A stretch of 64,000 nt of DNA from Macrostomum lignano. Its lineage: Eukaryota. The stretch's first letter is position 1; each line of letters opens with the position of its first letter. The stretch is taken from the NCBI GenBank assembly GCA_002269645.1, contig NIVC01001799.1, positions 1-64,000 of the forward strand. The letters are read 5' to 3'. The translations under genes were made by a program, and so were the position numbers. Below, piece by piece: positions 7,757 through 54,224 of the stretch. The notes under the pieces were generated by a model that saw only the letters and a program-made list of their open reading frames with translations, ran no database searches and was not told the DNA's origin.

Positions 7757-8399
7757 TAAATGAGACTCTGAGAGACGCTTTGATTACATTTTTTTGTCAA
7801 ATATTTTTAAACGTATGTTAAAATGTTGTAAAAATACACATAATGACGGGTCATTATCTGAGTGTCATTATCTGGAAGTAATTTACCATAGACGTTTCGG
7901 ACAATGGTCTTCGGCTCTATGCCAAATTCCCCATATTGATACTGCGCTATTACTTATCCATAGCGCATATCTTTAGTTGTTGGTGTTTGCTGTTATGTTC
8001 TAAAATTCATCCGTTATCCCGAGTTCAAAACCTCTATCCCGAAGTTTAAGTGAAGAAATAAATTGAATGTGTTTATGGTTTAACCATAGAAAATACGATT
8101 ACCCGTCCATTATCCCAACGACTGAAGGGCCACTTCGTGATAATAAAAGGTTGTTCGTAAGTTAGACTTTTTGATAATCGCCCGACTCACAAGTTCTCGC
8201 AGAAAATAAAAATTAAAATAAATGAATATCCACATTTTCTAATTTCAGTGTATAGCTATGCACATAAAATATAAGAGTACAGCACACAGCCCAGCACAAA
8301 ATTGAAACAGGCAGGGTGTTGAGTATGTTAAGAGAAAAGAAGAGAGGAAATATTGACTACATACGAGCGTATGCTATATAGCTTGATATGAAGTACGAG

Positions 8400-8760
8400 A
8401 AATATTTTTCGATCAAGTAGGGCAAATCTGCCTGTCTCAAAAGCTTAGCCAACGTAACTAGCAGCAAACTCCATCGGATCTCGCGACTCTGTACATCCGA
8501 GAAGGGCAAGAATACACCGATCACAGCATCTGGTGAGTTTAGTGGGTGGATGAAATTATATTTCACTTTCCCGATGTGTTTTTATGATTGAAAATAATTT
8601 GAATTTCCCTGATCTTGTTTCCTGTTCCGTGCCATAGTTAGCAGAGTGCGCGACCGGAATCGGAAGGGCATTCAATGAGCGAGATCTTGGCTATTGTGGG
8701 TCAACAGTCCGAGAGCACCGTCTGGCGCTACCTGGCGATTAAATGGGACAGTCCTTGCAA
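8400..8760 (+). pseudogene. Crypton YR C-terminal fragment with a probable intron after the HxxR motif
   Basis: EYTDHSI followed by GTGAGT at ~8533, then GHSMSEILAIVGQQSESTVWRYL. This is similar to GQTIQEILLITGRRCERTVKCYL at 17.43 kb. Confidence 0.6.
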
Positions 8761-9148
8761 AAATTCCAAGAACTTAGAATGAGCAAGGCGTGAGCGATGG
8801 AGCAAGGACTCCAAGCTCAATCGTGCAAAAAGCGGTGAATGTGTCTGACGGTCTGCAGATGAACGGCCGGGTATTTTCATAATGATCAATAGTATTTTTT
8901 TAACAATTTCCAACTGAAATGGGTACTGTGACAATTGTGTCGTACTTATGGAGACTAATTCTCCCCATTAATATTAATTGATATATGCTTTCTAATTCGG
9001 GTTTGTTCTTTCTGTTCTAAAAATAACCCACCGTTCTCTCGAGGTCAACACCATTGACGAGGTCAACACATCCAAAGGTTTCAAATGAAGGGTGTGGATC
9101 AGGCTTGACCATAGACACTTCCATTATCCTAAAGACTGATTTTTTGAC

Positions 9149-9400
9149 AATGGGTGGAGGCGCGAGTGTGCTAGGGGAAGCAACACCTAGATTACGAGTG
9201 CGCGTAGTGTCCATCCATGGCGTTGCTCCACCTAGAAACCCTCGCGCCTCCACCCATTATCCTGAACTGGGACCTTAGAATAGCTTTACTGTCGCTCGGA
9301 AGATACCATAGACAAAATCTTAGACTGATCTCCAGAGAACAAAAAGGGATGTTGAGGTCAAGCAAGCCAGAATATAGATAAAATTCTTGATTTTGTAATG
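9149..9400 (+). mobile_element. Candidate non-autonomous AATG-bounded mini-element
   Basis: AATGGGTGGAGGCGCGAG (9149) is inverted as CTCGCGCCTCCACCCATT (9241-9258). A tail containing CCATAGAC (9306) follows, then AATG at 9397-9400. The right end is tentative. Confidence 0.45.
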
Positions 9401-9545
9401 TGTTTGAATTTGATTTGACAACCACAGTTATTTGTAATAAAGGCAGAACGCATGCCACTGAGGAGTTCCTCACGCTTATTTTCTTGCTCACACCAACCCA
9501 CGGTCTTACAATGTTTTCACGAGTGGCGAAGCCATGAATTCATAT

Positions 9546-9630
<85 letters not shown>

Positions 9631-9666
9631 ATCTTTCTCTCTCTCTCTCTCGCTCTCTCTCTCTCT
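9546..9666. repeat. (CT)n microsatellite
   Basis: About 120 bp of CT dinucleotide with few interruptions. Confidence 0.99.
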
Positions 9667-9799
9667 TGCTGGGTGATAAGCTATGCCATAGACTACAACT
9701 CTACGAAGTCAGAATAAGTCGAGAAGGAGAGGAAGAAAACGAAGGCTAGCTCAGTATTTTCTTCGATTTAAACTTTCACTGAGCCTTGATCAAGTACGA

Positions 9800-11090
9800 C
9801 GGAATAGTGGAGGGGAGATTGTATGCTTGTCGACTGATGAATTGCAATTCGTCACTGGTCAGTCGGTCAACCGCTCCGGAGACATTGCGATCTCTTTAAT
9901 TTACCGAACTCGTGACTCTTGACGCAAGCTTCGTCGAGCTTGACTTACTTGACTTAGCTGCAGGGGGCGTCCGGTGGATGCAGCGAGGAGGCGGAGGAGA
10001 CCGCCCATTTCGCTAGCCCCTGGCGACCAATGACTTCCATCGAAGTGATGTCGCTCAGGGGACCCGTCGGTCTCGCCTGCAGCGCAGTACTCCTCACCGG
10101 CGGTGGGGAAGAAGTCAGCTCGTCCCGTGTCCCTGATGTACCGGGCGAGCAGCGGGATGCTCTCGGGCCTGCAAAGGTCGGAGAGAACCGGGTTTGGCCC
10201 GAGGTGAGTGAGCCTGGCCCTGGTGAAAACCGGGCTGTGGCAGATAAAGTGCTCGGAGTTTTCACTGCCTGAGCGGCAGAAGGGGCACCGCTCCTCGGGT
10301 ACCTGGCCCTGAAGGAAGCGGTGGCGAGAGAAGCAGCCATGCCCGGAGAGGGCCATACTGACAGCTCTGAGGTCTCTGCGGTTGACCCTGAGGAGGGCTC
10401 TACGCAGGAGAGGGGCAGGGGACGGCAGCACGGGATTGCCTGCAATTCCGGGTGTCGTACCACCTGCGGAGCTTCGTCTAGCAGTTTATACAGGGATTGT
10501 CAGAGTATCCGGAGTTAAGCGAGAGCGACGTACAGGAGATTCCGAAATTTGTGAAGGATTGCGCTGTGCGATCTATCGCGAAGCAGACCTAGATCTACTC
10601 TGAGAGAGTGAAGGCCTTTCTATCTGAGCGAGGGTTGTCAAGTGACCTCGAGATTATGCCGCCAAGATACGTGTCACTATCTCCGTTGTTTCTCTCTACC
10701 GTCAAGAAGCCCGATGGCACTGCCTACAATTGTAGCACACTTGTGTGCATAAACAGGCTGAAATGCATCGTTTCCTACTGGAAAATTGAGGCATGCCGCT
10801 CATTGGAAATCCGGATTTTGTTGAGCTGGAGAAGACCTTCAAGGCCGCCGCAGACAGTAACCGAGGTCTGTTGTTGACGGTGAGGTCTGATTTCCGGCAA
10901 TAAACAGTGAGGAAATGTCTAAACTGCACGCATACTTCACCATAGCAGATACGAAGAGGCTCCAGTATGAGGTGCTTTTTCTCATTGTGTTCCATTTCGG
11001 CTTTAGAGGTCAGCAAGGTGTAGCGCTCGTGTCTATGGCCATTAACTGAAATCTCAATTCCAGAAAACAACCCATTGTTTGGTGACTAAA
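9800..11090 (+). pseudogene. Degenerate Crypton YR (family D), N-terminal half, interrupted by a LINE fragment
   Basis: VKAFLSERGLSSDL, VKKPDGTAYNCSTLVCI and KRLQYEVLFLIVFHFGFRG (first catalytic Arg) are colinear with the other YR copies. Confidence 0.8.
9940..10469 (-). mobile_element. 5'-truncated non-LTR retrotransposon (R1/I/Ingi-like C-terminal CCHC region), ~530 bp
   Basis: LSGHGCFSRH...CPFC...ENSEHFIC motif. 3' tail (TAAGTCAAG)2 on the minus strand. Flanking 13-bp direct repeat AGCTTCGTC(G/T)AGC at 9927-9939 and 10470-10482. Confidence 0.85.
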
Positions 11091-14000
11091 ATGTCTTGCC
11101 TATCCTTTTTTCTTGTCAATATATTCCAGAATGCCATGTAGACCATTTGCGAACATTATTCTCTTATGTCAGTTAATAAATGCATAGTTAACTAATCGTC
11201 TATGATTCAAACGCCTGCTAAAAAGCTGAAATAATGGCCAGTTCAGTTTGTCATTACGCCAGGCTGCGTCTTATGAACAATAATTGATTTTTTCACGATA
11301 GATTTGAATCTGTCACCATCTGCAATACAACAATGCACAGTAACAAAAAGGTGACAAGAAACACTAGGAAATACAGTCTAATTTCAAGAAGGCTAAAGTC
11401 TCTTGAAATATTTTGGCTTGTCAATTTTGTCAGTTGCATATGGATTCTCACAGACTGCATCGGTTGAACATGCAGTTTTGCATGACGAAGATGTTCTCGC
11501 CATTTGGATGAGCGTTTGCGAAGTTGCCCGCCTCCTGGACCGTTGAGCTCTGGATATTGACTGGGCAGACGCTTGTGTTGACTATTGGGCTATCTGACTG
11601 GCTGATGGGCCCGCGCTTGTAATAACATGGCCATTTGAATATACACATACCGCACGCGAAATACCGCCGATATTGTCGTTTGAGTAACTTTAAAAATTAC
11701 ACTTTCTGACGCATAGCATCCTAAAATTTCAAGTCTAACACAATTACTTGATGCTCCCACCATCTCGTTCTACGTAGTCCCTCATCCCAACTGTTCCTTT
11801 TGTTCGATGTTTAATGCTTGACATGAAATGCTTGTCAATGAATATTACACCCAGTTTTATCCTGCGAAATTTTCTATGGCACTTGAAACTGGATGTCAAT
11901 GCTACATTGTTTTGTAACCTTTGTAAGCTTGTACTCTCTTATATGCAGCTATAATTGCCGAGCATATCCATGAGCACGTACTCATACGAGCGTAGACTGC
12001 TATTTGCACTAGCTAGCTAAGTAAATTTACTCACTAAAGCAAGTGGGGAGGGAGCTGGCCTAGTCTTGCAGATAAGCCGCCGGCTTTTGGTACTGCCAGG
12101 CGCTGTTATCTTTAGTTCAACTTAGAGGCACCCTGGCACTGCTAAAGAAGACTCTTGAATGTCAGTGAATATAGCAAAATATCAAGTCATATTCATTTAA
12201 ATTTACTACTGAAACAGTAATACTGTACGTCAGTACATGTTTGCGTCCAGCAATTATCTGCTTTCATTTTAGTATTTTTTGTCGAATTCGTTTAAGCTTT
12301 TCATTTGGAGGACAAACAGTGAGACAACCCGTCTCGAATCTGAGTTACCTGATAGGGCTGGCTATCAAGCCAGCCGACTTGAGCCGTTTTGTACTGATTT
12401 AAGCGAAAAAGCTGCTGTCAAGCTGCTGTCATGCTGTGTCTGCATGAACTGCCCTCTTAACAGCCTACGAGGGCATTTCTGAGACGAGTACAGTTTATAG
12501 TGTACGGTCTCCGAATTCTGAGTCCCGACTCATGCTCGGCTCTCTCTGTTGTAATCTTTCCCCAGGCTGTAACTGCCGCTTAGCAGTCTATTCCGTAATT
12601 TTATTGCTCAGCCCAAGCCTATTTCCTTCTAGTCTTCTTCTCTCACTTCCGAAAGAAGACTATACTCGTAGCTAATTAAATAGTGTACCAAGAACTTTAA
12701 AAGAATAGACGTGAATTGTATAAACACATTCACTAATCATTAAGGGCCGATCGGTTTTTCATATGCAAATTCGTATTTAAGCCTGCATACGCAGGCTTTG
12801 ATAAACCGGGTAAATGAAATAACATAAAATTGTTTTCGTTTTCGCCATGAGTCCGAATTCGAATTAGCACAATAGGGTTGAAGTGCATGCTGCATTGAAA
12901 ATTGACCACCTAGTCTAGTCCAGACAATCGCAGAAAATGCCCTTCGGCTGCTATTTACTAAATAGCTGAAATTTTACAATGTCTCAAAATCTAGGTACGA
13001 GTATAAAGGCCGCGTCGGCAGTATCAGCTCTGCGCAGAGCAAATATGGGGCTGCTTTTATTGCAATTTTTGTCAATAGACGCTCTCCGCCGTCTTTTATA
13101 TAGCCCCACAAGCACCCAAAGCGTGATTGCTTCTATCGGAAGCGAAGCGCAAATTCTGTTTTTAGATTTATGAGCAACAATAGTGTACCATCTGGAGGTC
13201 ATTCGCGTTTGACTCATACGATTCAATTGACTCGCACAGGCTTACTTTTTAGCGTTGAGCTTAAACCCAGTTGACCTGTGGAGCCAATTTATTGTGAGCA
13301 AAAATAGTGGAAATGATTAAAAAAATCTTTTTTAAAGTATTGGTTGATACAGAAACACATTGGCATCGATGTTCTAGCAGTGGGGGACATGATTACGAGC
13401 CTTAGTTATGAGTTGCAGCACTATCCTATAGATGTACGTAATGCAAATTCAGCGGCATAGTGCATTGCTTTGTGCCGACGCAAGATTGATGGAAAAGTTT
13501 TTTTTCAAAGAAATTCAATGCATTGTATGCAATGGAACACCGCAGCACCGTTTTGATGCTCGGGTGTTGCATCGCTTTACCTATTCCACTTAACTCCCGC
13601 TGCCTCATGCAGTTTCTTTATTTCTCGTATTTTCTTCGAAAAGCATCAGAATGTCACTGACAGTCTTCATTTGCCTCTCTATACCAGTCTCTCTTTCTCC
13701 GCTTCTTTTCTTATTATTATTCACTATAAATATTTTTGTGTAAAATTTAGCTTTTCTAAGGTTTCATTGGGTTTGCAACACTTTAATGCAAACTGCAGGA
13801 TAGATAGGGTGGAGGAGAAAGAAAGAAAAAAAGAGGGTAAGAGAGAAACGGTGCGCACAGACAGGCAAGGTAGTGGCGGTCTCGCCCCTGGGTAGGGTTA
13901 GAGTTTCTCGAGACCCCTGCGCTGGGCTTTGACTGGCTAGTTGTCGCCAGCGTGAGAGAGATAAAAAGACAAATTCAACTGACTGGCTGCTATAGCCATG

Positions 14001-14155
14001 CAAGTCCCTTAGTTTTCATTTCGAGACTGTCAAAATTCAATATCGCCACATGAAATAGGAGTAAAACGTAAAACATATTTTGCAGAAGATTTGGACAATA
14101 GTTTGCTTTAGCAATGAAAATCGCCAAATAGAATCCTGATAAAAAGCCCTAATTA

Positions 14156-15142: not shown

Positions 15143-17394
15143 ACACTATACGCGTATGAGGTTGAGCACAGTATGATTCGTAACAACTTTTAATTCAGCT
15201 CAATCAAGAGCATTCGAAGCTGTTGCGCTTTTCTTTCAGGTAGACTATACCGAAAACTTTTCGTCAGGGAAAGGAGACAAAAGATTTTGCGTGGCTTGTT
15301 TTAACGGACGATTTAGTAAAGTAATGCTGCTTGTAATTTAGGAATTTGTAAATGGAATTCGTATTCTAGTGATGTTTTTATCCAAAAATTCAGGCGAAGG
15401 TTGTTGTTTATTATTAATAAAATGACCAACACCAACTAACCAACCAAACCTAAAACCAACTAAAAAGGAGCGGTATATTTAGTTGGGGAAAAGAAATACG
15501 CTGTTTAAATTTTAATTAATAAAGAACTACTTGCACACCTCACAACGAATTCAATGCTTGAATGTATATCTAAAATCATTATCAGTACATGTCAGTTCGC
15601 GAATCTATATTGTTGCTTTGTAAAAGTAGAAAAAGCTTTCTTGTAAAATATAACAAATCTTAGTGTTCACTAAATAATTAAGTTATTATTTTGTTATTCC
15701 TGATAAGTAATGGTTTTAGCTTTAGCTTAAAGTTGAGTCATCTGTAAATTATTAACTGGTGGATTGTGCTGGGTCACTACCCAATATCAGTTCGATATCA
15801 ATCAATATAAACTGATCTGCACTCTGCACATGACTGACAGTTTATTTGATTCAGCAATAAAAGCTGGTCTCGTAAGAAGGTCGAAGAACTGCTGTTTGCA
15901 GATTAAAAATTCAAACTTTAAAAGGTTATGGCTTTTTAAACTAAGATAAAAATTTCTTATGATAGAACTGAAAGCGCACAGTAACTTTCCTGAATTGTCA
16001 GCAACTTTAAATTAATTTTCGAATGTAAAAATAAGAGTGGCTGAAAATTTGATAAAAGTTAAACGATTTGTCCTAGGGGGCACGGGTATATCAGTTTAGG
16101 AGATCTTGGCGCGGTTCCAAAAAGGGCCGGGACAGAAACTTGTGCTTTTGCAGAAACTGTCAGTAGCGGGGGGGACTGTTGGATGTTTCTTACAAATTGT
16201 TTATTCAGGCGATGTGAAATTCAAGTGTGTGTTGGAATTTTATCTAGTGAAATGCTTTTAATGCACGCACGGAACTTACCATTATCATTATTATTCCGTT
16301 GGATGACTAGATCACATGATTCGTTTGGTGAAATAATGGTGGTGCCGACTGTGAAGTGCCCATTGTGGGACAGTCAAGTGCTGTCTGGGAGTTTCACTAT
16401 GCAAGCATATTTGTACTATTTATATCTGTTGTATTCGAATACTATTGGAGAAGCTGAGCGGTGTAGAAACTGTAAAAGTACAGCGTTTCAGTTCGCTTGC
16501 ACCAACAAGATGCCCAATGTAACTGAGAGGCATCAGGTGCAAATAGATATTAGTTTAGCTGTCACATCAATCCGAGTTTACATTCAAATGATAGGTTCAT
16601 TGGCTTCAAGCAAAATAGCTGGTCTAACAGTTGACAGCAGAAAGGCAAGTTTAAATAAAAACGTTTATCAATGCTTGCGCTTTCCTTTTTATTGGGAATT
16701 TTCAACAAACAAGTGTCCCAAAATTTTGCGAAATTCTCCTCCTTTACTCTTAAATGTAAAATCGATTTTCCGGAGATACGGGGGCTAATTACAACATCGG
16801 AAATTCAAAACAGAACTGCAAATTTAATTTGGTCAAGACAGGCCATTGAAAACAAGTTGTCAGTCTAAATGGAACGAAAGCAACGCTTGAATGTTTAATA
16901 CAAACGAGCGTTTCTGTATTAAATCAACTAAAAGTCATCAATCAAAGTCAATCTTTTTTCTTTCTAACTCCTTCTATTCTGTCCGCTGCTCATTTAAAAG
17001 CGACCGCTTTTAGACAAAACAAACAACTGTTTTCATATCTATTTAATGAAGAGATAGTGCACGGCTTGAGATTATTGCAAGATCAAGTCGTGCATCTATC
17101 ACATTACCGACTGGTATAGCCAACTGTGGAGAAGAATTCAAATTTACCAATATCACTTAGCGTGCATTAATGCGCGATTGTCTGCACGCCGATTGACGCT
17201 TTAGTCGATCAGCTTGAAATAATGATATATTCTTCTGCACTATTTTTGAGTGTTATTGTTATTAGCGCGCGAGCGCGATACCGACCGCTGCATATGGTAG
17301 GTAGTTTGACCTGTACTTTTGCCCACCATATTCGTGTCTCTGTGAACACATTTGATTCTAGAAAATCAGTTGCCAACTTTTCTTAAACTGTAGA

Positions 17395-17767
17395 GTAACT
17401 AGAGCGTGCCACCTGGATACCTGTGGCCAGACTATCCAGGAGATCTTGCTCATCACTGGGCGAAGGTGTGAGCGAACTGTTAAGTGCTACTTATCGAGGC
17501 GACGTGATCGCAGTTTGTATAGGGCATCTCTGGCTGTGGATCAGGCGCTGAATCATACAGTTTCGGAAACTAATGTCAATAAGATCGTTAAGCTAGCTCG
17601 TCCAAAATCCAATCACAATAAGCGAGGCTATGATGGAGGAATGTGCGGATGTTTATCAAGAGCCTGTCCAGACCGACGGCGCACTACGTGTGCAGGCTGC
17701 TCCATCAAAGAAGATGAAAGTGACCATTGGCGGCAGTCGCAATCTGATCGATATTCTTTTTGAGTGA
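17395..17767 (+). pseudogene. Crypton YR C-terminal fragment (family E)
   Basis: GQTIQEILLITGRRCERTVKCYL, then in a shifted frame VQAAPSKKMKVTIGGSRNLIDILFE*, matching the C-termini of families A and B. Confidence 0.75.
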
Positions 17768-17961
17768 CGTTTCTGTGTAGGCCTGGTATTAACTGATTAA
17801 CATACGATTTCTTTGTTTAACAGTTTTTGATGTTTTTCTAACATAAAAAAATAAAATTTACCCTTTGTTATTGTTTAAATTGCCGTTGCGTGTTAATGTC
17901 CAAAATGAAATTAACACGCATCCCACGCGCGTGTTATTGTCACCAAAAGTGCATAGCAATG

Positions 17962-18486
17962 GATAAATAATCAGCGGTCCCAGTGCGTGACAACGATTGT
18001 CTAGCGAGCACGCACTGTAGGCCGGTAGGCGCTGTGCGACTGTGACTGAGACTGCGCACTCTATCATTTTATTTTCGACTCTAGCCTCAAGGTTAGCAGT
18101 CAAGCAAAGACTGTATGTGTGCGTGTTTCTGTCTATGTCATAGAATGCGATATATTTTGTATTCACTGTATTTTCTTTCATGCTGAGAGCCAAGCCCGCA
18201 ACTGAGAAATATAAGAGCCTGGAACAGAGGAATCCCAGACAAGACTAACGCAGGCAGACTTGCTGCTACAATATGGAAGACCCGATCTCTTTGCCTTCCG
18301 ATAGCTGAATCACAGCCCGCTTCATAGGCAACAGGCGTGAGCCAGAAAATCGTTGTCACGCACTTGGACCGCTGATTATTTGCATTGTTTTTCTATTTGA
18401 CGATCCTACAGACAATGCATTGCTTGTAGTAATAGATTGTTCTGCATTAAAAATGTGAATAATGATCGTCAAATTGCTAGACAATG
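17962..18486 (+). mobile_element. Non-autonomous AATG-bounded element, copy 1 (525 bp)
   Basis: AATG at 17958-17961 and 18483-18486. The left end GATAAATAATCAGCGGTCCCAGTGCGTGACAACGATT is inverted internally at ~18327-18367, ending in CATT. A paralogous empty site with a single AATG lies at 17162-17197. Confidence 0.85.
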
Positions 18487-18602
18487 CGCGATTGTCTGCA
18501 CACTGATTGATCTGCCAAGTATTTTTGTTCAAAGTATTTTAACGTCTATGGTAAAAACCATGATTATCTGCATTCACTTGTTGGCTCTACCATTCGGCAA
18601 TG

Positions 18603-18868
18603 GATAAATAATCTTCGGTCCCAGTGCGTGACAACGATTGTCTGGCGAGCGCCGGTAGGCACGCACTGTAGGCCGGTATGGCACTGTATGGCGCGAGCCA
18701 TCGGCACTGTATGGCGCGAGCCATAGACAAATCGTTGTCACGTGCTGCGACCGCTGATTCTTTACATTGTTTTTCTGTTTGACGATCCTACAGACAATAA
18801 ATTGTTTGTAGTAATGGGTTGTTCTGCATTAAAAATGTGAATAATGATCGTCAAATTGCTAAACAATG
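18603..18868 (+). mobile_element. Non-autonomous AATG-bounded element, copy 2 (266 bp)
   Basis: Same left end and same ~125-bp right tail as 17962-18486 but a different, shorter interior. AATG at 18599-18602 and 18865-18868. Confidence 0.85.
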
Positions 18869-18979
18869 GAGAGAATCTGTCGTTGAGTTGCACTGTTGGC
18901 TAGTCAATATGACAATGTGATAGAAGCACGTCTTGCAAGTGCAATAATGCCTAGACCACGGGTGCGAGTTTCTATGGAT

Positions 18980-33033: not shown

Positions 33034-33315
33034 GTCTCAGTGTGTCTTCATTCAACACCATACTTCATTTCGCTACTGGGCCATAGACAATGAAAAACAG
33101 TCTTCTATAGCTTGATTTTCCCAATAAGGATTAAATTGCTTGTTCCTATGCCCAATTGGCTTGGAAAATGCTGTAATATACTTGTTTTTTACACTGCTTG
33201 GTGCTGAGCTGAGCAAAAAGAGGGGAGTTACCATAGACAGTGGAAACTTCGAGACGAAATTTCAATCCTTGTCACTCTGAAAAGGGACAATAGAATCGGA
33301 ATTTGCAGCCCAACT

Positions 33316-33874
33316 CATAGATCTTATATACACTAGATAGGCCACTCAGTGGCACCCAGCCAAACCATTGAGTCTATGGGAAGCACTCCAAGAAGCGGTG
33401 ATTTTCAGTTACGCTCGTAGTTTTCAGTAGTTTGTGCGCATATTTATCAGTAGCTGAAACGAGCATTAAATTACCTTTTTATTTAGCTGTGTCAGCGTCA
33501 GACTTAGGATGCCTTTGCATGACCAGTGTAAGGTTATAATCAGCAGAGTGAGTTCAGAGAGAAAGAAATCGTCTATACATTTTTCTGGGTCAGTAGGCTG
33601 GTGGACAGCGGTGTATTTTTTTAAAGAAAACTAAAAGAAGTTGGCTCAAATGAGCGGATCCACCCCTCTACACAGTTCTGCGGCAGAGCCCCTCCCCGGG
33701 CTGATCCGTGTCTAGCCTGCTAAAAATTTTAAGCTGCGTCATTTTATTGCGATTCAATATATTTCTTCGTCCATTACCATAGACTATATTGACGATTAGT
33801 TTTCAGCAGTGCAAGCGAACATTTTTTCGTTAGCTGAATGGGGAGTGGCCTATCTAGTGTATATAAGATCTATG
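33316..33874. mobile_element. MITE with 32-bp perfect TIRs and 8-bp TSD (P-like or hAT-like)
   Basis: CATAGATCTTATATACACTAGATAGGCCACTC at 33316 and its reverse complement ending at 33874. Flanks GCCCAACT and GCCCAATT. Confidence 0.88.
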
Positions 33875-42154: not shown

Positions 42155-45049
42155 CTGCAATTAGGATAAGAATGTTGCATAGCGCAGATTTTATTAAAGA
42201 CAAATAAACTTTCACAAATTAAAAAAATGCACGTCATTTTCTTGTCACATCAAAAAACACATTGTATACACATGCTGCAGTACAGAATAATCTAGCTAAA
42301 ATGTTTCAAAATTCTTAGTGTGTAAAAATATTTTTAGCTGATCACATACTACTATTTATATAGTCCTATATAACAAAAGTCTTATAAATAATAATATATT
42401 ATAAACACAGATAAATATGAATATTGCTTTCTCACAAGCAAAAATTTAATTAATTTAGTGGTATGTAAAACTTAATAACTTAATATAAAATATTTTAAGC
42501 ACAATTAAAAAGCTTAAAAAAACATCTAAAATTTTAGAAGACAACTGTAAAGTAAAACTGATTTAAAAATCAAATAATTTAAAAAACTAATAATATGTTG
42601 TAAAAAGACTTACAATAGCTGATAATGTATCGACTTGTTTGGTTTGAGAAGAAGTGCAGTTTAATTCACTTAAACCTTTAATAGTCTGGTAATTCATGTT
42701 TGTAGAAAATAGCAAACCAGATAGAACTACGAACTAATATTAAAGTAGCACTAGCTATCTATAAGCCAGATTTCTCATAGCTGAAACAGCGTATTAAAAC
42801 GGTTCCACCGAAGCATGCTCAAATCTGCGCAAGCTTTATTTCCACAACAATATTAACAAATATACACGAGCTTTATGTATAAAATAAATCTCACCATTAA
42901 ATATTGTTACCCAGAAGATTATCTTAAGCTATTGTGTTTATGCCCTCTTAACTGAGCAATAAAAAGTAGTTAGGCGTTATTTTAATATTATATAGTTCTT
43001 TCCGCCCAGCTTACCATTTTCAGGAAGTTACATTTACACTTAATAGAGATGAGAATATTAATAAAAACCCTAATTAGAATGTTCGTTTTTTCTAGCATGC
43101 TTTTCTTTGCTCCATTGAATTTTTAAAAGCCTTGCTGGCAAAGTAAGAAATCCGATCGTGTTATAAAATGCGAATTAACAGAGCCGTCAACATGCAGACT
43201 CCGTCAAACTGATTTATGTGTACAGTACTTTTTGGTTACTATATTCGAATTCGTTGACATTTTCCAGCAATCCATTTAGTTAACTGTTGGGATTTGTATT
43301 ATATGGCATGTAGTATTCGTTATGATTACTTTCCAAATAATTACTTGACTTTTTCGTTCCAAAATTAAAAAAATATATTATAAATTTTGTAACTATAATA
43401 ATTTGTTAGAATGTTATTCCTTTGCATGTAAATACTGTTGAAACATGGTAGAACCCTCTGTAATTGGATATTAAAAATATTTGTTCGTTGGACTCAATTG
43501 GAGTGATACGCGTTGCTATGCCACTGCCGCTGTGAGTTAGCATCGCAAATTCGTCCTATAGCTCCTGTATTTCTAAAGTGCGGCCATCCCCGTTTTTTCT
43601 CGTGTTTTGATCAAAAACATTTAAAGTGCATTTATCGCGTGCTTCTTCTTCAGAATATATATTTGCATCGCACGTCACACACTATCCATTTTAATGTGAC
43701 GTGCGATCACCACTAGCTATTGCTCAACATTTTTCCAATATTCATTCTTAATCTATCTCACCGTAATAAAATCAACCGAACTATTAATACAAAGTTCAGA
43801 GCATTAGCCATTCAAATCTCTGTCTGCCTCTGCCTATTTTCTCATTTGCCATGAACCGTGGCATGAATTAAGTGTGAAATAGAGAGTGCGCCTGTCGCAG
43901 GGAATGGATAGAAGCTGAGGACCCTCGTACACCGAGTATGAGGCGAATCCAACCTAATAATCATAGCACCATGAGCTCTCTCTGGGACCTGCACTTCCCC
44001 ATCCGAGCCCATCTAGGAGGAATTGTAGCCTAAGGCCTAGCATCACCAACCAACTAAAGATCCCCCTATTCAAAAGTCCTCGTTTCCAGCACTGACTAGA
44101 CTGTCCCTTGTATGCCTCGCATAGAGTCCCTTAATCGGCCATTTCTAGCACAGTTGTTGGGGTCAAGAACCTTATAGTCTGCTACAGACCGGGATTCCCG
44201 TCTCGATTCCCGTGGGATTTTAATTTCACCGGGTGTACTCCTGCACAGGTGACTGGTGGCGGCCACGCGCCTTTGGCATGTTACTTCAAACAACCCGGGC
44301 TCGCGCTGTCTAGATAAATGGGATCTTGGCCGCAACGTCATCTACCACACCATCCAGAGGCGGACAAAAAGTCTAGGGGACGAGGTCTGGCGGCTGTAAC
44401 TTTCAGCGCCAGAGCTCAGGGGTTTGCAGAGGTATTCTCAGCATGCAACCCAGCAGGTTACGTCAAAAAAAGTAATTTTGAACTTTGAAAACATTCAGAA
44501 TATTAATGATTAGTTTTATTAAACTTTTCTACTAAGACTACTGCGGACTTTCCTTCCGCAGTAGTATTCAGGGTGTATATGTCTTAGTTTTGTTTATTTA
44601 TTTGTCTCATTTGGATAACTTTTAATTTTCTTGAAAATAAGTGAAAAACTTGCAGCATGAGTTGACCGTTCATGGGGTTGCAAAAGAAATCAAAAGTTGT
44701 TAGTTAGTTCTGAGCTTTTTTTAGCCACCCGAGAGATACTGTCTGTGGTAAATCCTTCACTTCACGCCACAGAATATAGACAGAATGGCCGATCAGCCCT
44801 CTCGCAGAAAAATCTGCCGCAAAAAGTATTTGCATATTTAGCTACTTTTGTGGTGAAGAAAGATAGTAGTCACTTATACTTACTCGTATGCGGCTCGGAA
44901 AGGTTCTGCCATAGACGACTGAGACTGCGAGAAGCAGCAGCCGATGCCATAGAATATACAGTATATTCTGTGGCAGCGGCTGCTGCTACTGACATTAATA
45001 AGGCAGTGATTGGCAGCAACGAAGGCATTAACAGAGACAACTTTAACAT

Positions 45050-45445
45050 TATGACAGCATAAAGAAGGCAATGCGCGCTGCTTATGGCTGCCAGAATTAC
45101 ACAAACAAATGTCCTGCACAAACGAGATTTCATCGTTTCCCAGAAAACCGTGAAAGGTATGTTCATGTACATGCGTGACTTGCCTGCTATTGCCACACAG
45201 TCATTCACTGAAACCTAACTACTGTAGGTGTGAAGATTGGGCTCGGCGCATTTTCCGATCAGACCTCTTGGGCAAGAAAAACGAAGCGAGGTGGAAGAAC
45301 GCTGTCGTGTGCAGCCACCATTTTCCCGACAGCATGTACGTGTGTCCTGACCAGAGACATGAGCCTGGGGTCAGACTGATGCCCACGGCATACCCGACGC
45401 TCCAGCTGTACAAAGAAACAGCAGAACCTTACCGCTGCAGTTAAC
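45050..45445 (+). pseudogene. THAP domain remnant, homologue of the 23.7-24.1 kb THAP
   Basis: YGCQNY..CPAQTRFHRFPENRER|(intron)CEDWARRIFRSDL..VVCSHHF..AYPTLQL, with the same intron position as the 23.8 kb copy. Confidence 0.8.
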
Positions 45446-46154
45446 AGAATGGGACTCACGCTTTCCGGCATCGTGTGTGACCAGGAGTCTACTCAGTGGC
45501 AGTGCTTGCGACAGTTAGGGGCGAATCCTGATCGCCCTTCCGTGTGCATCGAAGTAGACGGAGTTCAGTCACTGATTCCAGCTTAAATCGATGTTCCTCA
45601 TTGCTTAAAGAACATGCGAAATGCTCTGCATAAACATTGCATTGAATTTGATTATAGAGGCACTCGAAAAACTGCAAACTGGGCAGATATCGTTGCTGTG
45701 GCTCAAGTAGAACTAGGAAAGCCTGGAATCAATCATTAATCAGCCTAGGCACTGCCAAACCTGTTAATTTTAAATTCTGAAGCAGTATCTAAGTTTATAG
45801 AATCATACGCAGAGTCAACATATATTATAAATATATATATGCATATCGAATTTTCATAACTACTGCTCCGCTTCACCACAAAAGTAGTTTGTTTGCATAT
45901 TAATTTCCAAACATCCCGCGACAGCCGATCGGGCATTCTGTCTATATTCTGTGCTTCACGCTGTGCCAACTGCATTGCAGCTTTGCCTTAATGGCCATAG
46001 ACTGTCAATTGCCACAGACAGCCAGCGACATTCTTTTTCTATAGTTTATATCTTATCTGCAAAGTTTAATTCGTTCAAGAATAAAATAGTCTATGGTAAA
46101 AACCCAAACTCTAGCTTCCCTTTTCAACCCCTACTAGACTGGCATTAAACTAAA

Positions 46155-46755
46155 CTGTCCGTCAAAAGTTCCGGAACCCTTGCTACGATGTCTTCTAGCG
46201 GACATAATTTCAGTCCGTTTCAATTGTAACTTGATTCAAATGAAAGCTGCGGATCTCAGCTCCATGATGTGGTCAAGAAAAAGTTTATTCGAAGGAGCGC
46301 GTGTGAACAGGCCAGTGTTATGTACATAAAGGTTAGAGAAAAAAAGTGAGGAAAAGACAGACAAGCAATTGTTTTTTACTCTTTTACTCTCCCATGAAAG
46401 CCGACTGCACAAGAATCCATAAGAGCCTGTTGATTTCAACACAAGTTTTGGCCATAGACTAATGTTAGCCAGGCTGAACACTGCGCGCAAACCGATTCCT
46501 TCCCATGTGTGTTTGCTCCATAGACTCAGCAACCATAGACAATTGCTTGTTTGTCTTTTCCTCACTTTTTTCTCTAACCTTTATGTACATAACACTGGCC
46601 TGTTCACACGCGCTCCTTCGAATAAACTTTTTCTTGACCACATCATGGAGCTGAGCTCCACAGCTTTCATTTGAATCAAGTTACAATTGAAACGGACTGA
46701 AATTATGTCCGCTAGAAGACATCGTAGCAAGGGTTCCGGAACTTTTGACGGACAG
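46155..46755. mobile_element. Foldback MITE, 601 bp with ~217-bp TIRs (Tc1/mariner-like TA ends)
   Basis: 46155-46371 is the near-perfect reverse complement of 46540-46755. Right flank TA, left flank AA. Confidence 0.88.
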
Positions 46756-48344
46756 TATAGGATTAGGATTTTAAATACCATTATTTACAAATTTGAAGTT
46801 CAGAAGATAAAAAATATACAGGGTATACAAAGTCTTAGCGCTGGCATAACAGGCATATTACGGATTCCTATCTGTGCATTTTTGCATTTTTGCATTTTGC
46901 AGTGCATTTTGAAACGAAAGTATATATCAAATATATACAAGCGGTCCTTGCTGGAGTATGAATACAATTTCCTGTGCTAATCCAGTCCAGATGTCAACTT
47001 TAAATGTCCACGGTTATGTACCAGTGAGTTGTGGATTTTCTTTTATCAACTACATGTATTATGATGTGCATTTGCATATCGAAGTGCTGGGGTGGCATCA
47101 TGGTCTTACTGCGACTGTACAATGCACACTGCAGAAGAACACCCATGGCACAGAAGTTAAGCAACGTCACTTCATTGATACACAGTGATTGCATTTTAGT
47201 GGGCGCTAGCGTCTTGGGCGCTGGCACCAGAGGCGCAAAGCACCGAACAATTTGAAGCAATCGATGTCGCAGTATTCCACAATATACAGGCAAAGGTTGA
47301 AATTCTTACACAGAAGAAGAGAGTTTGAGGCTTCCAAGCTTTCGGAGGCTTTGGGTAAGAGACAGACAGGCAGACAGAACCGGGGGACCCTCAAGTCATG
47401 TGATTCGGTTCTGCACGCTCACGCGCTCTCCCCGTGACTTGGCTCGGCGATACGAGCTCCCTACTGCCTGCCTGTTAGTCATAGTTAGTGATTACGCAAT
47501 AACTCTCAAGGTCAACCTGTCTGGGCCACCAGTGCCCACCACACACACTCTCTCTCTTCTCTAGCTTCGTCCTTTCCTCCGATTGCGAAGTTCTTTCATT
47601 ATTTTCCATCGCAATAGGGGGGGTCTGACAGTCGGTTATGCAACAGCTCTCTGCGCACACGTCACAGATGGACAGTCTGGGTAAGAGAGACAGAAAAGGT
47701 CATGCCAACCAATGAGATTCGCCTATACGAATATGACAAAACGAATGGCCCCAACCTCAGCCTCCACCGCCCAACTCCAAGCTTATATTCGAGGGCCCCA
47801 GGAAGAAAATGGGTCCCTCCAAGCAGAGCCCCCACTCGCACCGACCTCTCTTTCTGTGCTTTCCCTGTTCGCGCCCTCTGCCACGGTCTTCTTTTTGTCT
47901 GTTTTATTTTCCAAATTCTCGCAGGCGCTTCAAATGTCCACGATGGATTGATCAATATGCATTATTGACACGATCGGCACTTTTTAAGCTGACGCATCAT
48001 CGTGGCCAGATGGAGCACCAGCAGAGAGTTGGAATCAGCATCGACTGTCAAATATGCCCTACAGTCCAAGACTTGTGTGTTGTATTTGATATTATCCATT
48101 TATCTTTGACTATTATTTCTGTATATAACCGGTCGTGTAGACTCGAGGGACCTTCACGTGTTCACTGCAAGATACGCAGTGAGCTGCTGCCGCTGCCGCC
48201 ACTGCTGCTGTGTACACGTGAAGCGCCCTAACCGATCTACGATAATCAGCTGCTAATCCGAATTAGTGTATTTTATTAATCTTACCTATTTTTAATAAGG
48301 ACTTATTTTAATGCGATTGTGATTTAATGTCTGCAGTTTGCTAG

Positions 48345-48935
48345 TTAGTGCACCAGGTGGCGCCAGCAAGGGTACCGGAGTGGCGCCAGTAAGGGTGCCG
48401 AGGGGGCGCCAGTAGGGTACCAGGGGCCCCAGTAAGGTACCAGGGGGCGCCAGTAAGGGTACCAGGGGTCGCCATTAAAGGCACCAGGGGGCGCCAGTAA
48501 GGGTACCAGGGGTCGCCATTAAAGGCACCAGGGGGCCCGAGTAGGGTACCAGGGGTCGCCATTAAAGGCACCAGGGGGCGCCAGTAGGGTACCAGGGGTC
48601 GCAATAAAGGCACCAGGGGGCGCCAGTAGGGTACCAGGGGTCGCCATTAAAGGCACCAGGGGGCGCCAGTAAGGGTACCAGGGGTCGCCATTAAAGGCAC
48701 CAGGGGGCGCCAGTAAGGGTACCAGGGGTCGCCATTAAAGGCACCAGGGGGCGCCAGTAAGGGTACCAGGGGTCGCCATTAAAGGCACCAGGGGGCCCGA
48801 GTAGGGTACCAGGGGTCGCCAATAAAGGCACCAGGGGGCGCCAGTAGGGTACCAGGGGTCGCAATAAAGGCACCAGGGGGCGCCAGTAGGGTACCAGGGG
48901 TCGCAATAAAGGTATCAGGGGGCGCCAGTAAGGGC
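48345..48935. repeat. GC-rich minisatellite, ~40-bp unit (GGGTACCAGGGGTCGCCATTAAAGGCACCAGGGGGCGCCAGTAA)
   Basis: Directly visible tandem array. Confidence 0.92.
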
Positions 48936-49145
48936 ATGGGGGCCGTTTTATTGGCTTGGATGGATTAAGCTGTTACGTTGAATATTTAGCTTAAAATAAA
49001 ACATGAAACTCATCGTATCGCTAGTCAAATAAGATATAAAGAAACTTTCTTATAATCCATTCTTGGTTATTATAAGATTTTTTTTTAAATTAGAGTTCTG
49101 AAAAAGAAATCAGTGATCTAAACTAGATAGACAATGTGAATTCAG

Positions 49146-50245: not shown

Positions 50246-50514
50246 TTTGGTTTCAGAAAAATAAATCCAGTACATCTGTGGCCTGTTTAACTGGATTTTA
50301 TACTGGGCATTTTCAGACTTTGTTATTACGAAGTTTTGGACAATTCTCAGCAAATAAATCAGTTGAAATTCCGCATATGTTGGACCGAAATTGTCGGCAT
50401 AAAAAATGAAGGCAGTGAAGAAGGACTTTTGCTTGATTTGTGCTTTGACAGGAAATTCGCTGTTTGGCATGAATGACCATTCACTTCAGATGTTTTTTAA
50501 AGGAGTTTAGTGCT

Positions 50515-51070
50515 GCATTGTTGGCGCCTCTGTTTTGGCGCCTTTGTTTTGGCGCCTCTGTTTTGGCGCCTTTGTTTTGGCGTCTCTGTTTTGGCGCCTC
50601 TGGTGCTTCATTTTAGCGCCTTTAATGCTTCAGTTTTTGGCGCCTTTTTTGCTTAATTATTGGCGCCTTTAATGCTTCACTTTTGGCGCCTTTTTTGCTT
50701 AATTATTGGCGCCTTTAATGCTTCACTTTTGGCGCCTTTTTTGCTTAATTATTGGCGCCTTTAATGCTTCACTTTTGGCGCCTTTTTTGTGCTTCATTTT
50801 TGGCACCTTTGTTTTGGCGCCTTTGTTTTGGCGCCTTTGTTTTGGCGCCTTTTGTGCTTTATTTTTAGCGCCTTTTGTGCTTCATTTTTGGCGCCTCTTG
50901 TGCTTCATTTTTGGCACCTTTGTTTTGGCGCCTTTGTTTTGGCGCCTTTTGTGCTTTATTTTTAGCGCCTTTTGTGCTTCATTTTTGGCGCCTCTTGTGC
51001 TTCATTTTTAGTGCCTCTGGTGTTTCATTTTTTGCGCCTTTAATGCTTCATTTTTGGCGCCTCTTGTGCC
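50515..51070. repeat. Degenerate TTTTGGCGCC-based tandem/low-complexity array
   Basis: Recurrent TTTTGGCGCC with variable spacers. Confidence 0.9.
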
Positions 51071-51508
51071 TCATTTCTTGGCTTTTCATTTTACTTCCGC
51101 GCGAGTTCAAAGTATTCCAGATTTTTCATGCTTAAAAAATGAATTCAAAGCCTCCCAGCTTGAAGAAATCTCCAATTCCGTGTGCCGTTTATTTACTCTA
51201 TCGATAGACCGAGAGCTCCCAGTAATGCCCAGCCATGCATTAACATTTATAAGTTATGGCCTGTTTTTGGTCCTCTGATAAAGAGGTTTTTTGATTCAAT
51301 AATTTTTTTGCCAGTAGGTAACAAATTTATGTAAAAAAGTTAAAATATAAAATTAGCATTTGAAAAAATTACAAATTACTTCAAGACGTGTAATTTTGCA
51401 ATTTTTTTAGAAAACAAACTTTGTTATAAAAATAGACTTTTTGTTAAAAATATTAGGCGTAGTTGAAGGTTAAGCAAAAATATGGGGCAGCCGAGCCACG
51501 CTGATTGT

Positions 51509-53764
51509 TCAGGAGCGGCAGTCGCGGTGCGGCGGTGCGGAGTCCACATCGGAGCAGATGGACGGCAGGCTCTCGGTCGGCTGCAGCAGGTGGTGCACCG
51601 CGGCCTCCCGACGGGCGCTTCCGCCGGCTCGGCCGGTGCCGCCGCTGCAGTCCCAGTTCAGCACCCGGTTGATGCTGCAGCGGATCCTGTGGTGTCCTCG
51701 GTGCCGGCCTGACGAGTTGCAATTGGCGAAGTTCGACTGTTGCTGCTGCTGCTGCTGCTGCTGCTGTTGTCGCTTTTTCGATTTCTGACACCTGCGCGAT
51801 GCCGAGGTTGCGCAATTCGACTTCGCGCCAATTCGTTGGGCCTTTGAGCAGAACTGAACCTGCGGCTGACAGGAGGTTATCAAAGCGTTCTGCGTCAGGC
51901 AGGCCGTTGTCACTGACGCTGCTGCTGCTGCAGCGGACGCTGAGGCGGCGGAAACGGCGGCTACGGACTGTTGAAGCAGCACGAGCACCGACTGCACCGG
52001 GACCGGGTTGACGCACTGGCACTGACCGGGCGGAATCTCCGCTGCCGGCTTGTGCTGCGACTCGTTCTTCGGCCCCGAATGCAACTGCTGCTTCTTCTGG
52101 TCGGCCGCGGCGGCGTGGAAGATCCGGCTCTGCGCCGAGGTCAGGCTGTCGTAGGAGCCGATGCGGACCATCACGGACTCGGCCGTGGACGAGGTGACGG
52201 TCGATGAATCACACAGCGCCGCCTCCTCCGGATCGGCGGCGCTCGGGCCAGTTTGATTGATGAACTGCTTCAAATCTGTTTCCTTCGGGCCGTGCGAGTC
52301 GTCTTGGCTGCCGGCACCGTCAGTGAGAATTGTGGCCGCCGTGGTTGGGGTCGTCACTTCCCAGTATTTTTCCGATTCATGCGGCTGCGACGGCATGCTT
52401 GTGTGGTTTTTTAGCGTGGCGCCTTTTGCCCGGCTTGTATCCTCTGCTTTCTGCTGCTGCTGCTGGACTGGGGATTCCACAATCTGATAATTGACCGAGT
52501 AAATCTCGTTGAAGGGGTACTGCTGATAAACCACTGCCACTGCCGGCTGGTGCAGCTGCCGGGCCCTGCAGTCTGAGCGGCCCGTGGCGCTGTTCTGGCT
52601 GCTGTCGAACTCGCCGCCGCCTTCGCCGAAGTCCTTCATCCGGTCCCTCTCCGGCGAGCCGTCCTCGGTCATCTTGTCGCTGTTCGAGTCAGCCAGTTCC
52701 AGGCTGCTGTACTCCCGCTTCGCTCGCTCCTCCACCGCCTTCACCGCCGCCTCAGCTTCGGCAGCGTCGTCAGACTGAGGCGCTCCGCCAGCCCCGGCTG
52801 GTTCGCTCCCGCTCTGCTTCACCTGATTTGAGCCGGTCTGCTGCGCCTCCACTGCAGTGCTGTCCGCGTCTACCTGCTGCCCGGTCTCCAGCTCGATGGC
52901 CTGCTCCGACATCCCCCGCTGCTGGCATGGATCATGGCGGTAGAGCAGCTGCTGGGCTGGCTTCACCGAGCCGCTGCTCAAATCATCATCATCGTCTTCC
53001 TCCTCCTGCTTCGCTTCCTCGGGTTCCGGCGGCAGGGCCGCGTCCTGCGGCTGTTCACTGGCCGGCTCAGCGTTCTGGCCGTCCTGCGGCCTCTCGCTGG
53101 GCGGCTCGGCGTTCTGGCCGCTGTCCTCGTCGCTGTGCGAGTCTACCACTAGCGGCATCGCCGTATCCTTCCGGCTGACGGTTCCCTGGCCCGGTTCCTC
53201 TTGCAGAACGTTGCGCAGACTTTCGCTGGTCATGGAGACGCCGAGGCCGTGCACGCCGAAGTTGAAGTAGGAATTGGCCGGGCTGGCCTCGCTGCCCGAA
53301 ATCGTGGTGGCGTCGCTGTTGGAATCGGCCAGCGAGATGGCCGGTTCGGAGCCCAGTTCCAGCGGCTCCATCTCCAGCTTCTTGCCCCATGCCGAAGTAT
53401 CTGGCTCTTGGACGCCGTCTTGACTGCTCGCATCATCGACTGTGGTGAGTTTCGGCCGATCGTCGCGGTTCGGCTTTGCATCCGAGTTGAGCACGTCGCC
53501 TATCAGGGAGTCGTCAGCGCAGCTGCGCAGCTCGCCGGCACCGCAGCTGAACTCGCCAACAGCCTCGTGCGTCGCGCCGCAGTGGCAGACGACGACCAGC
53601 TTGACTCGACGACCGGCGCAGCCCGAGCGGCCGCCGCGGCTCAGGACGATCGGGCAGAACGTGAACACTCGGATTCGCTGAGCTGGCGAATTCGGCTCGT
53701 TGTTCCTGGCGTGTTGCTGACGGCATTCGACGACAAGGCAGGGCAGCGGTGCCGCCTGCGTCAT
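51509..53764 (-). CDS. 751-aa largely disordered acidic, Q/A-rich protein of unknown function (single long ORF)
   Basis: 2.25-kb open frame with GC-rich codon usage like the neighbouring host exons, poly-Q/poly-A tracts and a Cys/His-rich N-terminus. No family recognised. Confidence 0.7.
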   Translation of the reverse strand: MTQAAPLPCLVVECRQQHARNNEPNSPAQRIRVFTFCPIVLSRGGRSGCAGRRVKLVVVCHCGATHEAVGEFSCGAGELRSCADDSLIGDVLNSDAKPNRDDRPKLTTVDDASSQDGVQEPDTSAWGKKLEMEPLELGSEPAISLADSNSDATTISGSEASPANSYFNFGVHGLGVSMTSESLRNVLQEEPGQGTVSRKDTAMPLVVDSHSDEDSGQNAEPPSERPQDGQNAEPASEQPQDAALPPEPEEAKQEEEDDDDDLSSGSVKPAQQLLYRHDPCQQRGMSEQAIELETGQQVDADSTAVEAQQTGSNQVKQSGSEPAGAGGAPQSDDAAEAEAAVKAVEERAKREYSSLELADSNSDKMTEDGSPERDRMKDFGEGGGEFDSSQNSATGRSDCRARQLHQPAVAVVYQQYPFNEIYSVNYQIVESPVQQQQQKAEDTSRAKGATLKNHTSMPSQPHESEKYWEVTTPTTAATILTDGAGSQDDSHGPKETDLKQFINQTGPSAADPEEAALCDSSTVTSSTAESVMVRIGSYDSLTSAQSRIFHAAAADQKKQQLHSGPKNESQHKPAAEIPPGQCQCVNPVPVQSVLVLLQQSVAAVSAASASAAAAAASVTTACLTQNALITSCQPQVQFCSKAQRIGAKSNCATSASRRCQKSKKRQQQQQQQQQQQSNFANCNSSGRHRGHHRIRCSINRVLNWDCSGGTGRAGGSARREAAVHHLLQPTESLPSICSDVDSAPPHRDCRS

Positions 53765-54224
53765 TGCTGCGGAGGTGCAGTAGGTCGCGGTTCCCTGGTG
53801 CTCGAACTCCCGGCTGAATTTGCCTGCCCAGCAGCCGGTTGCGAGATTTTATTTTGAACGTCTCAATCAAGTCAAAGCAGACTTGCGCGCGCTTTGATGA
53901 CTTTTTAGCGTTTCAATTTATCAACTTCTCTATTTAACGATTTTAGTCTATGGCTCCGTCCTCTGCGGCTGCCTAGTTTCTCAGTGGCGTGCTCAAGGGG
54001 TCAGCGGAATGGGCACGATCCTGCTCGCCTCCGTCAAATGGGTCTGCATCAGTCTTGTGATTTGTGGGCCTATGACTGATTTTGGTGTGAACAAAAACCA
54101 GTGTGATGGACCTCCGTTCTCTTCACTGCAAACTGCTAAGTTTAAAACTCTTGAGAGAAAATTGGCACCGGACATTGGATACATAAAATCGATCTTTTCA
54201 AGGGGTTCCAACTGCTAGGTACGC

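Follow-up and report, generated by a model that had tools for sequence, protein, structure and literature searches.

Background

Transposons carrying binding sites of regulatory factors are already known. In Caenorhabditis elegans, the miniature inverted repeat transposable elements (MITEs) CERP2 and CELE2 contain m1m2 motif pairs, which are bound by the THAP-domain factor HIM-17 (PMC9757741). Here we describe an octamer, CCATAGAC, found in unusual abundance in the first 64 kb of the 159-kb contig NIVC01001799.1 of Macrostomum lignano (assembly GCA_002269645.1). This 64-kb stretch is called the window below. The octamer resembles the m1m2 motifs, which are likewise short, have no match among known motifs, reside in inverted repeats of MITEs and were spread by transposition to thousands of sites, most of their copies lying in non-promoter repeats and some at gene promoters (PMC9757741). 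The m1m2 system differs from it in being restricted to two related MITE families, in consisting of a two-motif pair with fixed spacing, and in that both binding and function have been demonstrated, those of the octamer being putative. Moreover, the octamer is a single word shared by unrelated classes of transposons, namely Cryptons, elements with 8-bp target site duplications (TSDs) and a MITE with a TA TSD.

A second parallel comes from M. lignano itself, where long terminal repeat (LTR) retrotransposons carry heat shock elements (HSEs), with one to four host-factor sites per regulatory region (PMC12801592). The case of ONSEN in Arabidopsis, as cited in the same work (PMC12801592), is analogous. 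HSEs are, however, known, degenerate and conserved sequences recognized by a known factor and present in few LTR families, while the octamer is exact, novel and located in DNA transposons.

Two other types of short repeats show similar architecture. Transposons Ac/Ds, En/Spm and P contain subterminal transposase-binding repeats, which lie in either orientation no more than a few hundred bp from the ends and are specific for each family. The octamer is similar in having several copies near both ends of three elements (a, b and d below), although not in MITE c, and differs in crossing families with unrelated termini and integration chemistry. In C. elegans, each 21U-RNA gene is preceded at a constant distance by the Ruby motif (CTGTTTCA), which lies in two large chromosomal domains and does not travel with transposons. 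The octamer shares with it the character of an exact 8-mer with A/T-rich flanks, present on both strands in dense regional clusters; unlike the Ruby motif, it is cargo of transposons. What sets the octamer apart is the occurrence of one exact word across unrelated transposon classes and its intolerance of mismatches. In full-text searches of the literature, the octamer turned up solely in lists of primers, none of them linked to Macrostomum, and no such motif is reported in papers on the M. lignano genome, its PIWI-interacting RNAs (piRNAs) or its transposons.

Results and discussion

Abundance, independence and shape of the octamer

GC content of the window is approximately 45%, and minisatellite arrays dominate its 3' third. 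All counts given here refer to the window and to its near-identical M. lignano duplicates. The window contains 38 exact copies of CCATAGAC, 26 on the plus and 12 on the minus strand, against 1.31 expected from 100 dinucleotide-preserving shuffles of the window, the shuffle maximum being 6. An original prediction, made by eye, of about 37 copies and approximately 20-fold enrichment had missed only the copy at 7291(-), just outside the range it covered. Its named positions are all correct, including both mirrored pairs in terminal inverted repeats (TIRs), the MITE centre and 53946(-); so are its estimate of about 25 copies in 18.5-34.8 kb (exactly 25) and its two empty stretches, with 0 copies in 11.04-18.54 kb and in 34.75-44.9 kb.

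Outside tandem arrays, the octamer ranks first among all 8-mers of the window (38 copies). The runners-up CATAGACA, ACCATAGA and GCCATAGA are overlaps of the octamer itself, and the next unrelated 8-mers are A/T-rich, with at most 23 copies. It reaches this rank because many unrelated transposons each carry non-coding copies.

Self-comparison of the window revealed few interspersed duplications: the pair of Cryptons A1/A2, a 308-nt TIR pair, a 75-nt TIR pair and the MITE arms at 46.2-46.8 kb. Six copies are explained by these duplications and 32 remain. A sensitive test of in-register flank identity (20 nt on each side, compared with 300 random window positions at the 99.9th percentile) leaves 28 independent contexts; the Poisson probability of at least 28 copies with 1.31 expected is approximately 2e-27. 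The enrichment thus survives the collapse of homologous copies. Nor do the copies trace to one small repeat, since their mean in-register flank identity (11.5/40) stays close to that of controls (10.1/40) across the 28 contexts.

The word is sharply delimited. Its 24 one-mismatch neighbours have 0-7 copies each, about 50 in total, which is near background. Sequence preferences extend beyond the core. In the 32 non-redundant copies, T occupies 82 of the 160 positions from -6 to -2 (p=1e-10), position -1 is a purine (R) in 28 (p=1e-5) and position +1 is A or T (W) in 27 (p=4e-4); A is favoured at +2. The T fraction at -6 to -2 is 0.54 in exact copies vs 0.33 in one-mismatch neighbours. As these flanking preferences are significant and softer than the core, the recognition unit is longer than 8 nt: a T-rich stretch (-6 to -2), R (-1), CCATAGAC and W (+1), about 15 nt with an invariant 8-nt core.

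No strand bias was found among the 32 non-redundant copies (20:12, p=0.2). The distribution along the window is highly uneven: 37 of the 38 copies fall into three zones rich in transposons, 21.9 kb taken together (1.7 per kb), and one copy is present in the other 42 kb. Local homotypic clustering beyond this zone effect is not significant (14 neighbour pairs within 200 nt vs 10.4 expected, P=0.09). Twenty-five of the 38 copies lie inside delimited elements.

Several simple sources of the repeats were rejected. Chance and base composition are excluded by the shuffles, the 8-mer ranking and the Poisson probability, and a duplication artefact by the 28-32 independent copies left. One small dispersed repeat or micro-MITE is contradicted by unrelated flanks and by the lack of TSDs around the candidate CCATAGAC...GTCTATGG pairs (GTCTATGG being the inverted-strand partner in paired copies), and the terminus of a tiny MITE by a conserved block around 45995/46089 that reaches approximately 50 nt past the pair. 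A structured RNA gene or tRNA-derived short interspersed nuclear element was rejected too, as the window contains no Rfam match at gathering score and no tRNAs.

Octamers in Cryptons

Two carriers, A and B, are Cryptons: they encode a tyrosine recombinase with DUF3504 and no DDE transposase. The open reading frames (ORFs) at 21729-23130 and 28528-29280 contain PF12012 (DUF3504) together with PF00589, the first also a QRICH1 domain. Homology searches returned only near-identical paralogues or proteins without contigs, and look-ups of the Crypton B ORF and of the THAP ORF mentioned below gave no match. The Crypton relatives found carry DUF3504 domains, one of them coming from a TARA ocean metagenome.

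Crypton A1 (18975-21012, plus strand) has its ORF annotated as a 334-aa gene (19128-20132). All of its copies are on the plus strand, 18984 and 19029 preceding the ORF and 20938 within non-coding sequence at the 3' end. Crypton A2 (27915-29911, plus strand) shares 96.6% identity with A1 and resides within element a; its copies 27924, 27969 and 29838 are duplicates of those in A1. Crypton B (21549-23376, plus strand; ORFs 21729-23130, DUF3504 and Phage_integrase) carries 21549(-), located 180 nt upstream of the ORF, and 23293(+) and 23369(+) downstream. In both families, copies are thus present 90-180 nt upstream of the ORF.

In both families the octamer also stands beside a repeated word of the family's own. 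In Crypton A, the arrangement CCATAGAC-N5-CATTCCTGCACG is found at 19029 and 20938; CATTCCTGCACG is specific for Crypton A, with five occurrences per element and none elsewhere in the window. In Crypton B, CCATAGAC-N5/6-TTTCTTGG is found at 21549, 23293 and 23369 and is palindromic (TTTCTTGGnnnCCAAGAAA) at the latter two. This fixed offset in both Cryptons suggests a composite site, in which the shared word lies beside a family-specific word that may be the site of the recombinase. Outside Cryptons, the octamer is paired with an adjacent palindrome in 5% of cases vs 3.4% in controls, so there is no general association, and a general pairing with a neighbouring palindrome is excluded outside Crypton B.

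A 32-nt palindrome, ATCGTGCAGGAATGAAGTCATTCCTGCACGAT (94% complementary), built from CATTCCTGCACG, is present at 20879-20910 and 29779-29810. It is a candidate recombinase-binding or recombination site of an animal Crypton. To our knowledge, no terminal structure has been described for animal Cryptons.

The left junction of Crypton A1 (18966-18991) reads TCTATGG-ATTTTG-CCATAGA, i.e. 7-nt inverted arms separated by a 6-nt spacer. A1/A2 homology begins 3 nt before the spacer (TGG/TGC-ATTTTG), and the A2 junction is without the left arm. The left junction of A1/A2 lies 9 nt from an octamer copy, and the right junctions (21012 and 29911) are without the octamer. When an inverted partner is sought within 0-12 nt of each copy, the best one matches on average 4.7/8 positions upstream and 4.1/8 downstream, vs 4.1/8 in controls, and 18984 is the sole copy with a 7/8 inverted partner. 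A classical tyrosine-recombinase core site is excluded as a general explanation, inverted arms at 6-8-bp spacing being absent save at 18984. Stramenopile Cryptons of the CryptonS group are reported to have TATGG termini and animal Cryptons to have no terminal repeats (Kojima and Jurka, PMC3212892). TATGG is contained in the reverse complement of the octamer; we note this likeness and do not find it persuasive. Against it stand the other copies lacking an inverted partner, A2 lacking the left arm and the right junctions lacking the motif.

Octamers in elements with terminal inverted repeats

Element a (25875-30834) has 308-nt TIRs (25875-26182 and 30521-30834) starting with CAGGGACTAC and a perfect 8-bp TSD, TACCAACC. 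Its copies 26140(-) and 30556(+) are approximately 265-271 nt from each end and point outward. The label "P-element" that was given to it is based on the 8-bp TSD and one sub-threshold match to a P-transposase helix-turn-helix domain (E=0.0025); its CAGGG termini would presumably fit a hAT element too.

Element b (31370-32992) is bounded by 75-nt TIRs (31370-31443 and 32918-32992), each containing the palindromic pair CCATAGAC-N29-GTCTATGG (31387+/31424- and 32931+/32968-), with a further copy at 31474(-). The basis of its label "MULE" is a faint FLYWCH match in an internal ORF (E=0.0075). Tandem copies of TCTCGTTTCGCCGA(TTC), inverted with respect to each other, flank this element outside its TIRs at 31252-31341 and 32996-33040; the real boundaries of the element may therefore lie beyond 31370-32992, and it may possess its own subterminal repeats.

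Element d (33316-33874), a MITE of 559 bp, is bounded by perfect 32-nt TIRs (CATAGATC...) and flanked by an 8-bp TSD, GCCCAACT/GCCCAATT (7/8 match). Its copies 33372(-) and 33777(+) face outward at distances of 56 and 90 nt from the ends. Element g (17071-18948) has imperfect 58-nt TIRs (74%) and contains 18544(-) and 18721(+). Element h (44768-45953, 1186 bp), with TIRs of approximately 30 nt, CACAGAATATAGACAGAATG... (CACAGAATATAGACAG...), and a perfect 8-bp TSD, CTTCACGC, contains 44909(+) and, 38 nt away at 44947, the variant CCATAGAA. MITE c (46153-46757, 605 bp) has TIRs of approximately 223 nt and a TA TSD, by which it is Tc1/mariner-like; its copies 46452(+), 46518(+) and 46533(+) are situated in the centre of the element.

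Termini of the TIR elements (CAGGGACT, CATAGATC, CACAGAAT, ACTGTCCG, ACCATCTG) are unrelated to each other, and this applies also to the three families with an 8-bp TSD (CAGGGACT, CATAGATC and CACAGAAT). TIRs of the carriers are 95-100% identical. The claim of the original prediction that transposons using different enzymes share the octamer is borne out by two Crypton families, three 8-bp-TSD families with unrelated termini and one TA-TSD MITE. Its placing of the copies at transposon ends needs to be corrected: they are carried by unrelated elements as stated, but mostly in subterminal or internal positions and not at the termini.

One further element of the same zone, e (23450-24946, 1.5 kb), is bounded by perfect 39-nt TIRs, and its ORF encodes a THAP domain (E=1.9e-5); no TSD is evident at the boundaries drawn.

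Remaining copies

The copy 7291-7298(-) lies in a pseudogene of a mariner-type transposase (Mos1 transposase, E=1.7e-7), within codons V-T-I-D-N. Among copies in delimited elements it is the sole one in recognizable (former) coding sequence, and it could be accounted for by the approximately 1.3 copies expected by chance. The first cluster (7886-11038), for which no carrier was delimited, is non-coding and comprises 7886(+), 9109(+), 9306(+), 9686(+) and 11031(-). Copies in unclassified sequence include 25304-25311(-), non-coding, between the THAP element and element a; 31171-31178(-), just outside an inverted-repeat arm (31027-31120); 33081(+) and 33231(+) (33081-33238), non-coding, between elements b and d; and 34738-34745(+), also non-coding. 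An older inverted pair, 45995(+)/46089(-) (45995-46096), is present in both homeologous contigs.

The last copy, 53946-53953(-), is followed by A/T-rich sequence and lies 182 nt upstream of the ATG of a 751-aa ORF on the same strand (51509-53764, minus). This ORF is an intronless, minisatellite-flanked orphan with no Pfam domain and no relative beyond a 98%-identical M. lignano paralogue. It may be either a host gene or a lineage-specific or element-derived ORF.

Arrival of copies with insertions

Two near-identical duplicates of parts of the window were available for comparison: contig NIVC01000150.1, approximately 98% identical over 41.5-63.7 kb of the window, and contig NIVC01001415.1, approximately 99.5% identical over 4.2-17.8 kb and then interrupted by an assembly gap. 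The latter keeps all six copies of the first cluster. The former keeps 53946 and the inverted pair 45995/46089 and is without four copies (44909, 46452, 46518 and 46533). At the corresponding places it has a clean empty site for element h and an empty site for MITE c, CATTAAAC-TA-GGATTA. It is thereby demonstrated that these four copies were brought in by two recent insertions unrelated to each other.

The older pair 45995/46089 is flanked by the insertion points of h and c, at distances of 40 and 54 nt, and elements d and e lie 74-78 nt from a pre-existing copy. Of seven junctions, four are within 80 nt of a copy vs approximately 24% expected at local density (rough P of approximately 0.07 in a small sample). 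A preference for insertion near the octamer is thus suggestive only.

In NIVC01001415.1, at approximately 13650-13990, a stretch of N is followed by an unrelated tandem repeat at the very point where the transposon nest of the window would start, and the join is doubtful for this reason.

A possible host factor site as transposon cargo

Because the carriers differ in integration chemistry and termini, and yet keep several exact copies with different flanks, recognition by one protein that is not encoded by the elements would be the simplest explanation. Our tentative preference is for a binding site of one DNA-binding protein of the host, which many transposon families would carry as a module for cis-regulation or chromatin accessibility. 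The unit of about 15 nt (T-rich, R, CCATAGAC, W) would be the recognition site of a single sequence-specific M. lignano protein, either a host factor or a long-domesticated one, which no single element encodes. Many unrelated, recently active families of DNA transposons hold the unit, with between one and five copies per family in non-coding sequence (5', 3' or subterminal). The module may keep the element transcribed or accessible in cells in which heritable transposition takes place (germline or neoblasts); families would retain it by selection, and each insertion would spread it further. A cis-regulatory role is favoured because copies precede the ORFs of both Cryptons as well as the 751-aa ORF, and because of the precedents of working HSF sites in M. 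lignano LTR retrotransposons (PMC12801592) and of HIM-17 sites spread by C. elegans MITEs (PMC9757741).

Several observations weigh against this view. Copies are found also in 3' ends and in the MITE centre, in either orientation, unlike in a simple promoter, and total intolerance of mismatches is unusual for an ordinary transcription factor site. Only one of the five called genes in the window, the 751-aa ORF, has an octamer upstream, and element e, with the clearest THAP ORF, contains none. Nor does conservation lend support: about 1.6 octamer changes would be expected among duplicate copies and 0 were seen (P of approximately 0.2, estimated from identities), an uninformative result, and the homeologs are too similar (98-99.5% identical) to speak about selection.

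Should one factor read the word, much of the mobile DNA would share a dependence on it, or be open to control through it, in a genome of which approximately three quarters are repeats, and the transposons would offer a ready-made source of regulatory sites for host genes. At approximately 1.7 octamers per kb of transposon sequence, the word may also serve as a simple marker of young DNA-transposon sequence in M. lignano. Working transgenesis (PMC5730564) and a single-nucleus atlas of chromatin accessibility (assay for transposase-accessible chromatin, ATAC) and RNA (PMC11398382) are available for this species.

Alternative explanations

The copies might instead be subterminal transposase- or recombinase-binding repeats, i.e. 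sites of a transposon-encoded DNA-binding domain, of THAP type or another N-terminal one, shared by modular exchange or cross-mobilization. Several features agree with this: symmetric and outward-pointing copies 17-270 nt from both ends of elements a, b and d, the possible membership of the three carriers with 8-bp TSDs in one superfamily, THAP and P-transposase-like remnants in the nest, and the distance of 5-6 nt between the octamer and the family's own repeated word in both Cryptons. The site of a single transposase is nevertheless improbable, because the carriers differ in integration chemistry. Their termini are unrelated and they display three integration signatures (tyrosine recombinase, 8-bp TSD and TA TSD); moreover, copies in MITE c are central, those in Crypton A are all oriented alike, element e, which alone has a clear THAP ORF, is without the octamer, and no inverted partner occurs at recombinase-like spacing. 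We consider this explanation unlikely.

Less likely again is a host architectural cofactor of transposition, similar to bacterial IHF, that would bend or organize DNA beside element-specific sites and be used by unrelated elements. IHF sites have a T-rich flank on one side, and a one-sided T-rich flank is found at the octamer as well. The fixed 5-6-nt offset to CATTCCTGCACG in Crypton A and TTTCTTGGnnnCCAAGAAA in Crypton B and the subterminal position in TIR elements would also suit such a role, but the lack of a general association with palindromes outside Cryptons (5% vs 3.4%) and the three copies in the centre of MITE c do not. In addition, we know of no sequence-specific architectural factor for eukaryotic DNA transposons, which counts against such a cofactor.

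A broader proposal, to which we assign a similarly small probability, is that one protein reads the exact word and matters for mobility or expression of many unrelated DNA transposons, both tyrosine-recombinase and DDE ones, and that its sites become preferred landing places, so that octamer carriers would seed self-growing nests. If true, eukaryotes would have an equivalent of a shared host integration cofactor, or else a beacon that marks out transposon-rich loci.

The octamer could also be a mark of genome defence, through which a host protein would license transposon-rich loci as sources of piRNAs or as heterochromatin, in analogy to the Ruby motif and to zinc-finger-guided cluster definition. 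An exact 8-mer with an A/T-rich flank on both strands would be appropriate for this purpose. The 16-kb nest with 25 copies is within the size range of M. lignano piRNA clusters, whose median is 9.7 kb and maximum 93.7 kb, but no motif is reported for these clusters (PMC4604429). Furthermore, the copies are cargo of individual young elements that also insert elsewhere, and elements would be under selection to lose a silencing mark. This explanation appears decidedly improbable.

Least probable of all is a functionless hitch-hiker, descended from a common ancestral fragment (old CATAG-type termini, for example) or exchanged among elements, and sharp only through the youth of its copies. In its favour, the elements are very young (TIRs 95-100%, A1/A2 96.6%), with little time for decay, and both d and h have CATAGA or ATAGAC strings in their TIRs. 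Against it, the 28 contexts have unrelated flanks, the copies lie away from the termini, single families contain several copies with different flanks, and the extended flank preferences together with the absence of enriched variants point to a constrained site. The original prediction's alternative of a relic of CATAG-ended termini is not supported: the copies lie off the termini, the first base (C) hardly varies, and no enrichment is seen for mismatch variants.

Other repeats of the window

Minisatellites, in at least 12 different arrays, take up much of 48-64 kb. One of them (50506-51082) consists of approximately 20 copies of a 23-nt unit, TTTTGGCGCCTTTTGTGCTTCAT, in which TTTGGCGCC presumably resembles an E2F-type site. 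Another (48350-48934) is a 22/44-nt minisatellite with a unit containing CCAGGGGGCGCC. A perfect microsatellite, (AGTC)124, 496 nt long and 100% identical throughout, is present at 40998-41493 inside the span of a called 839-aa C2H2-type gene (approximately 37.7-42.7 kb, minus strand).

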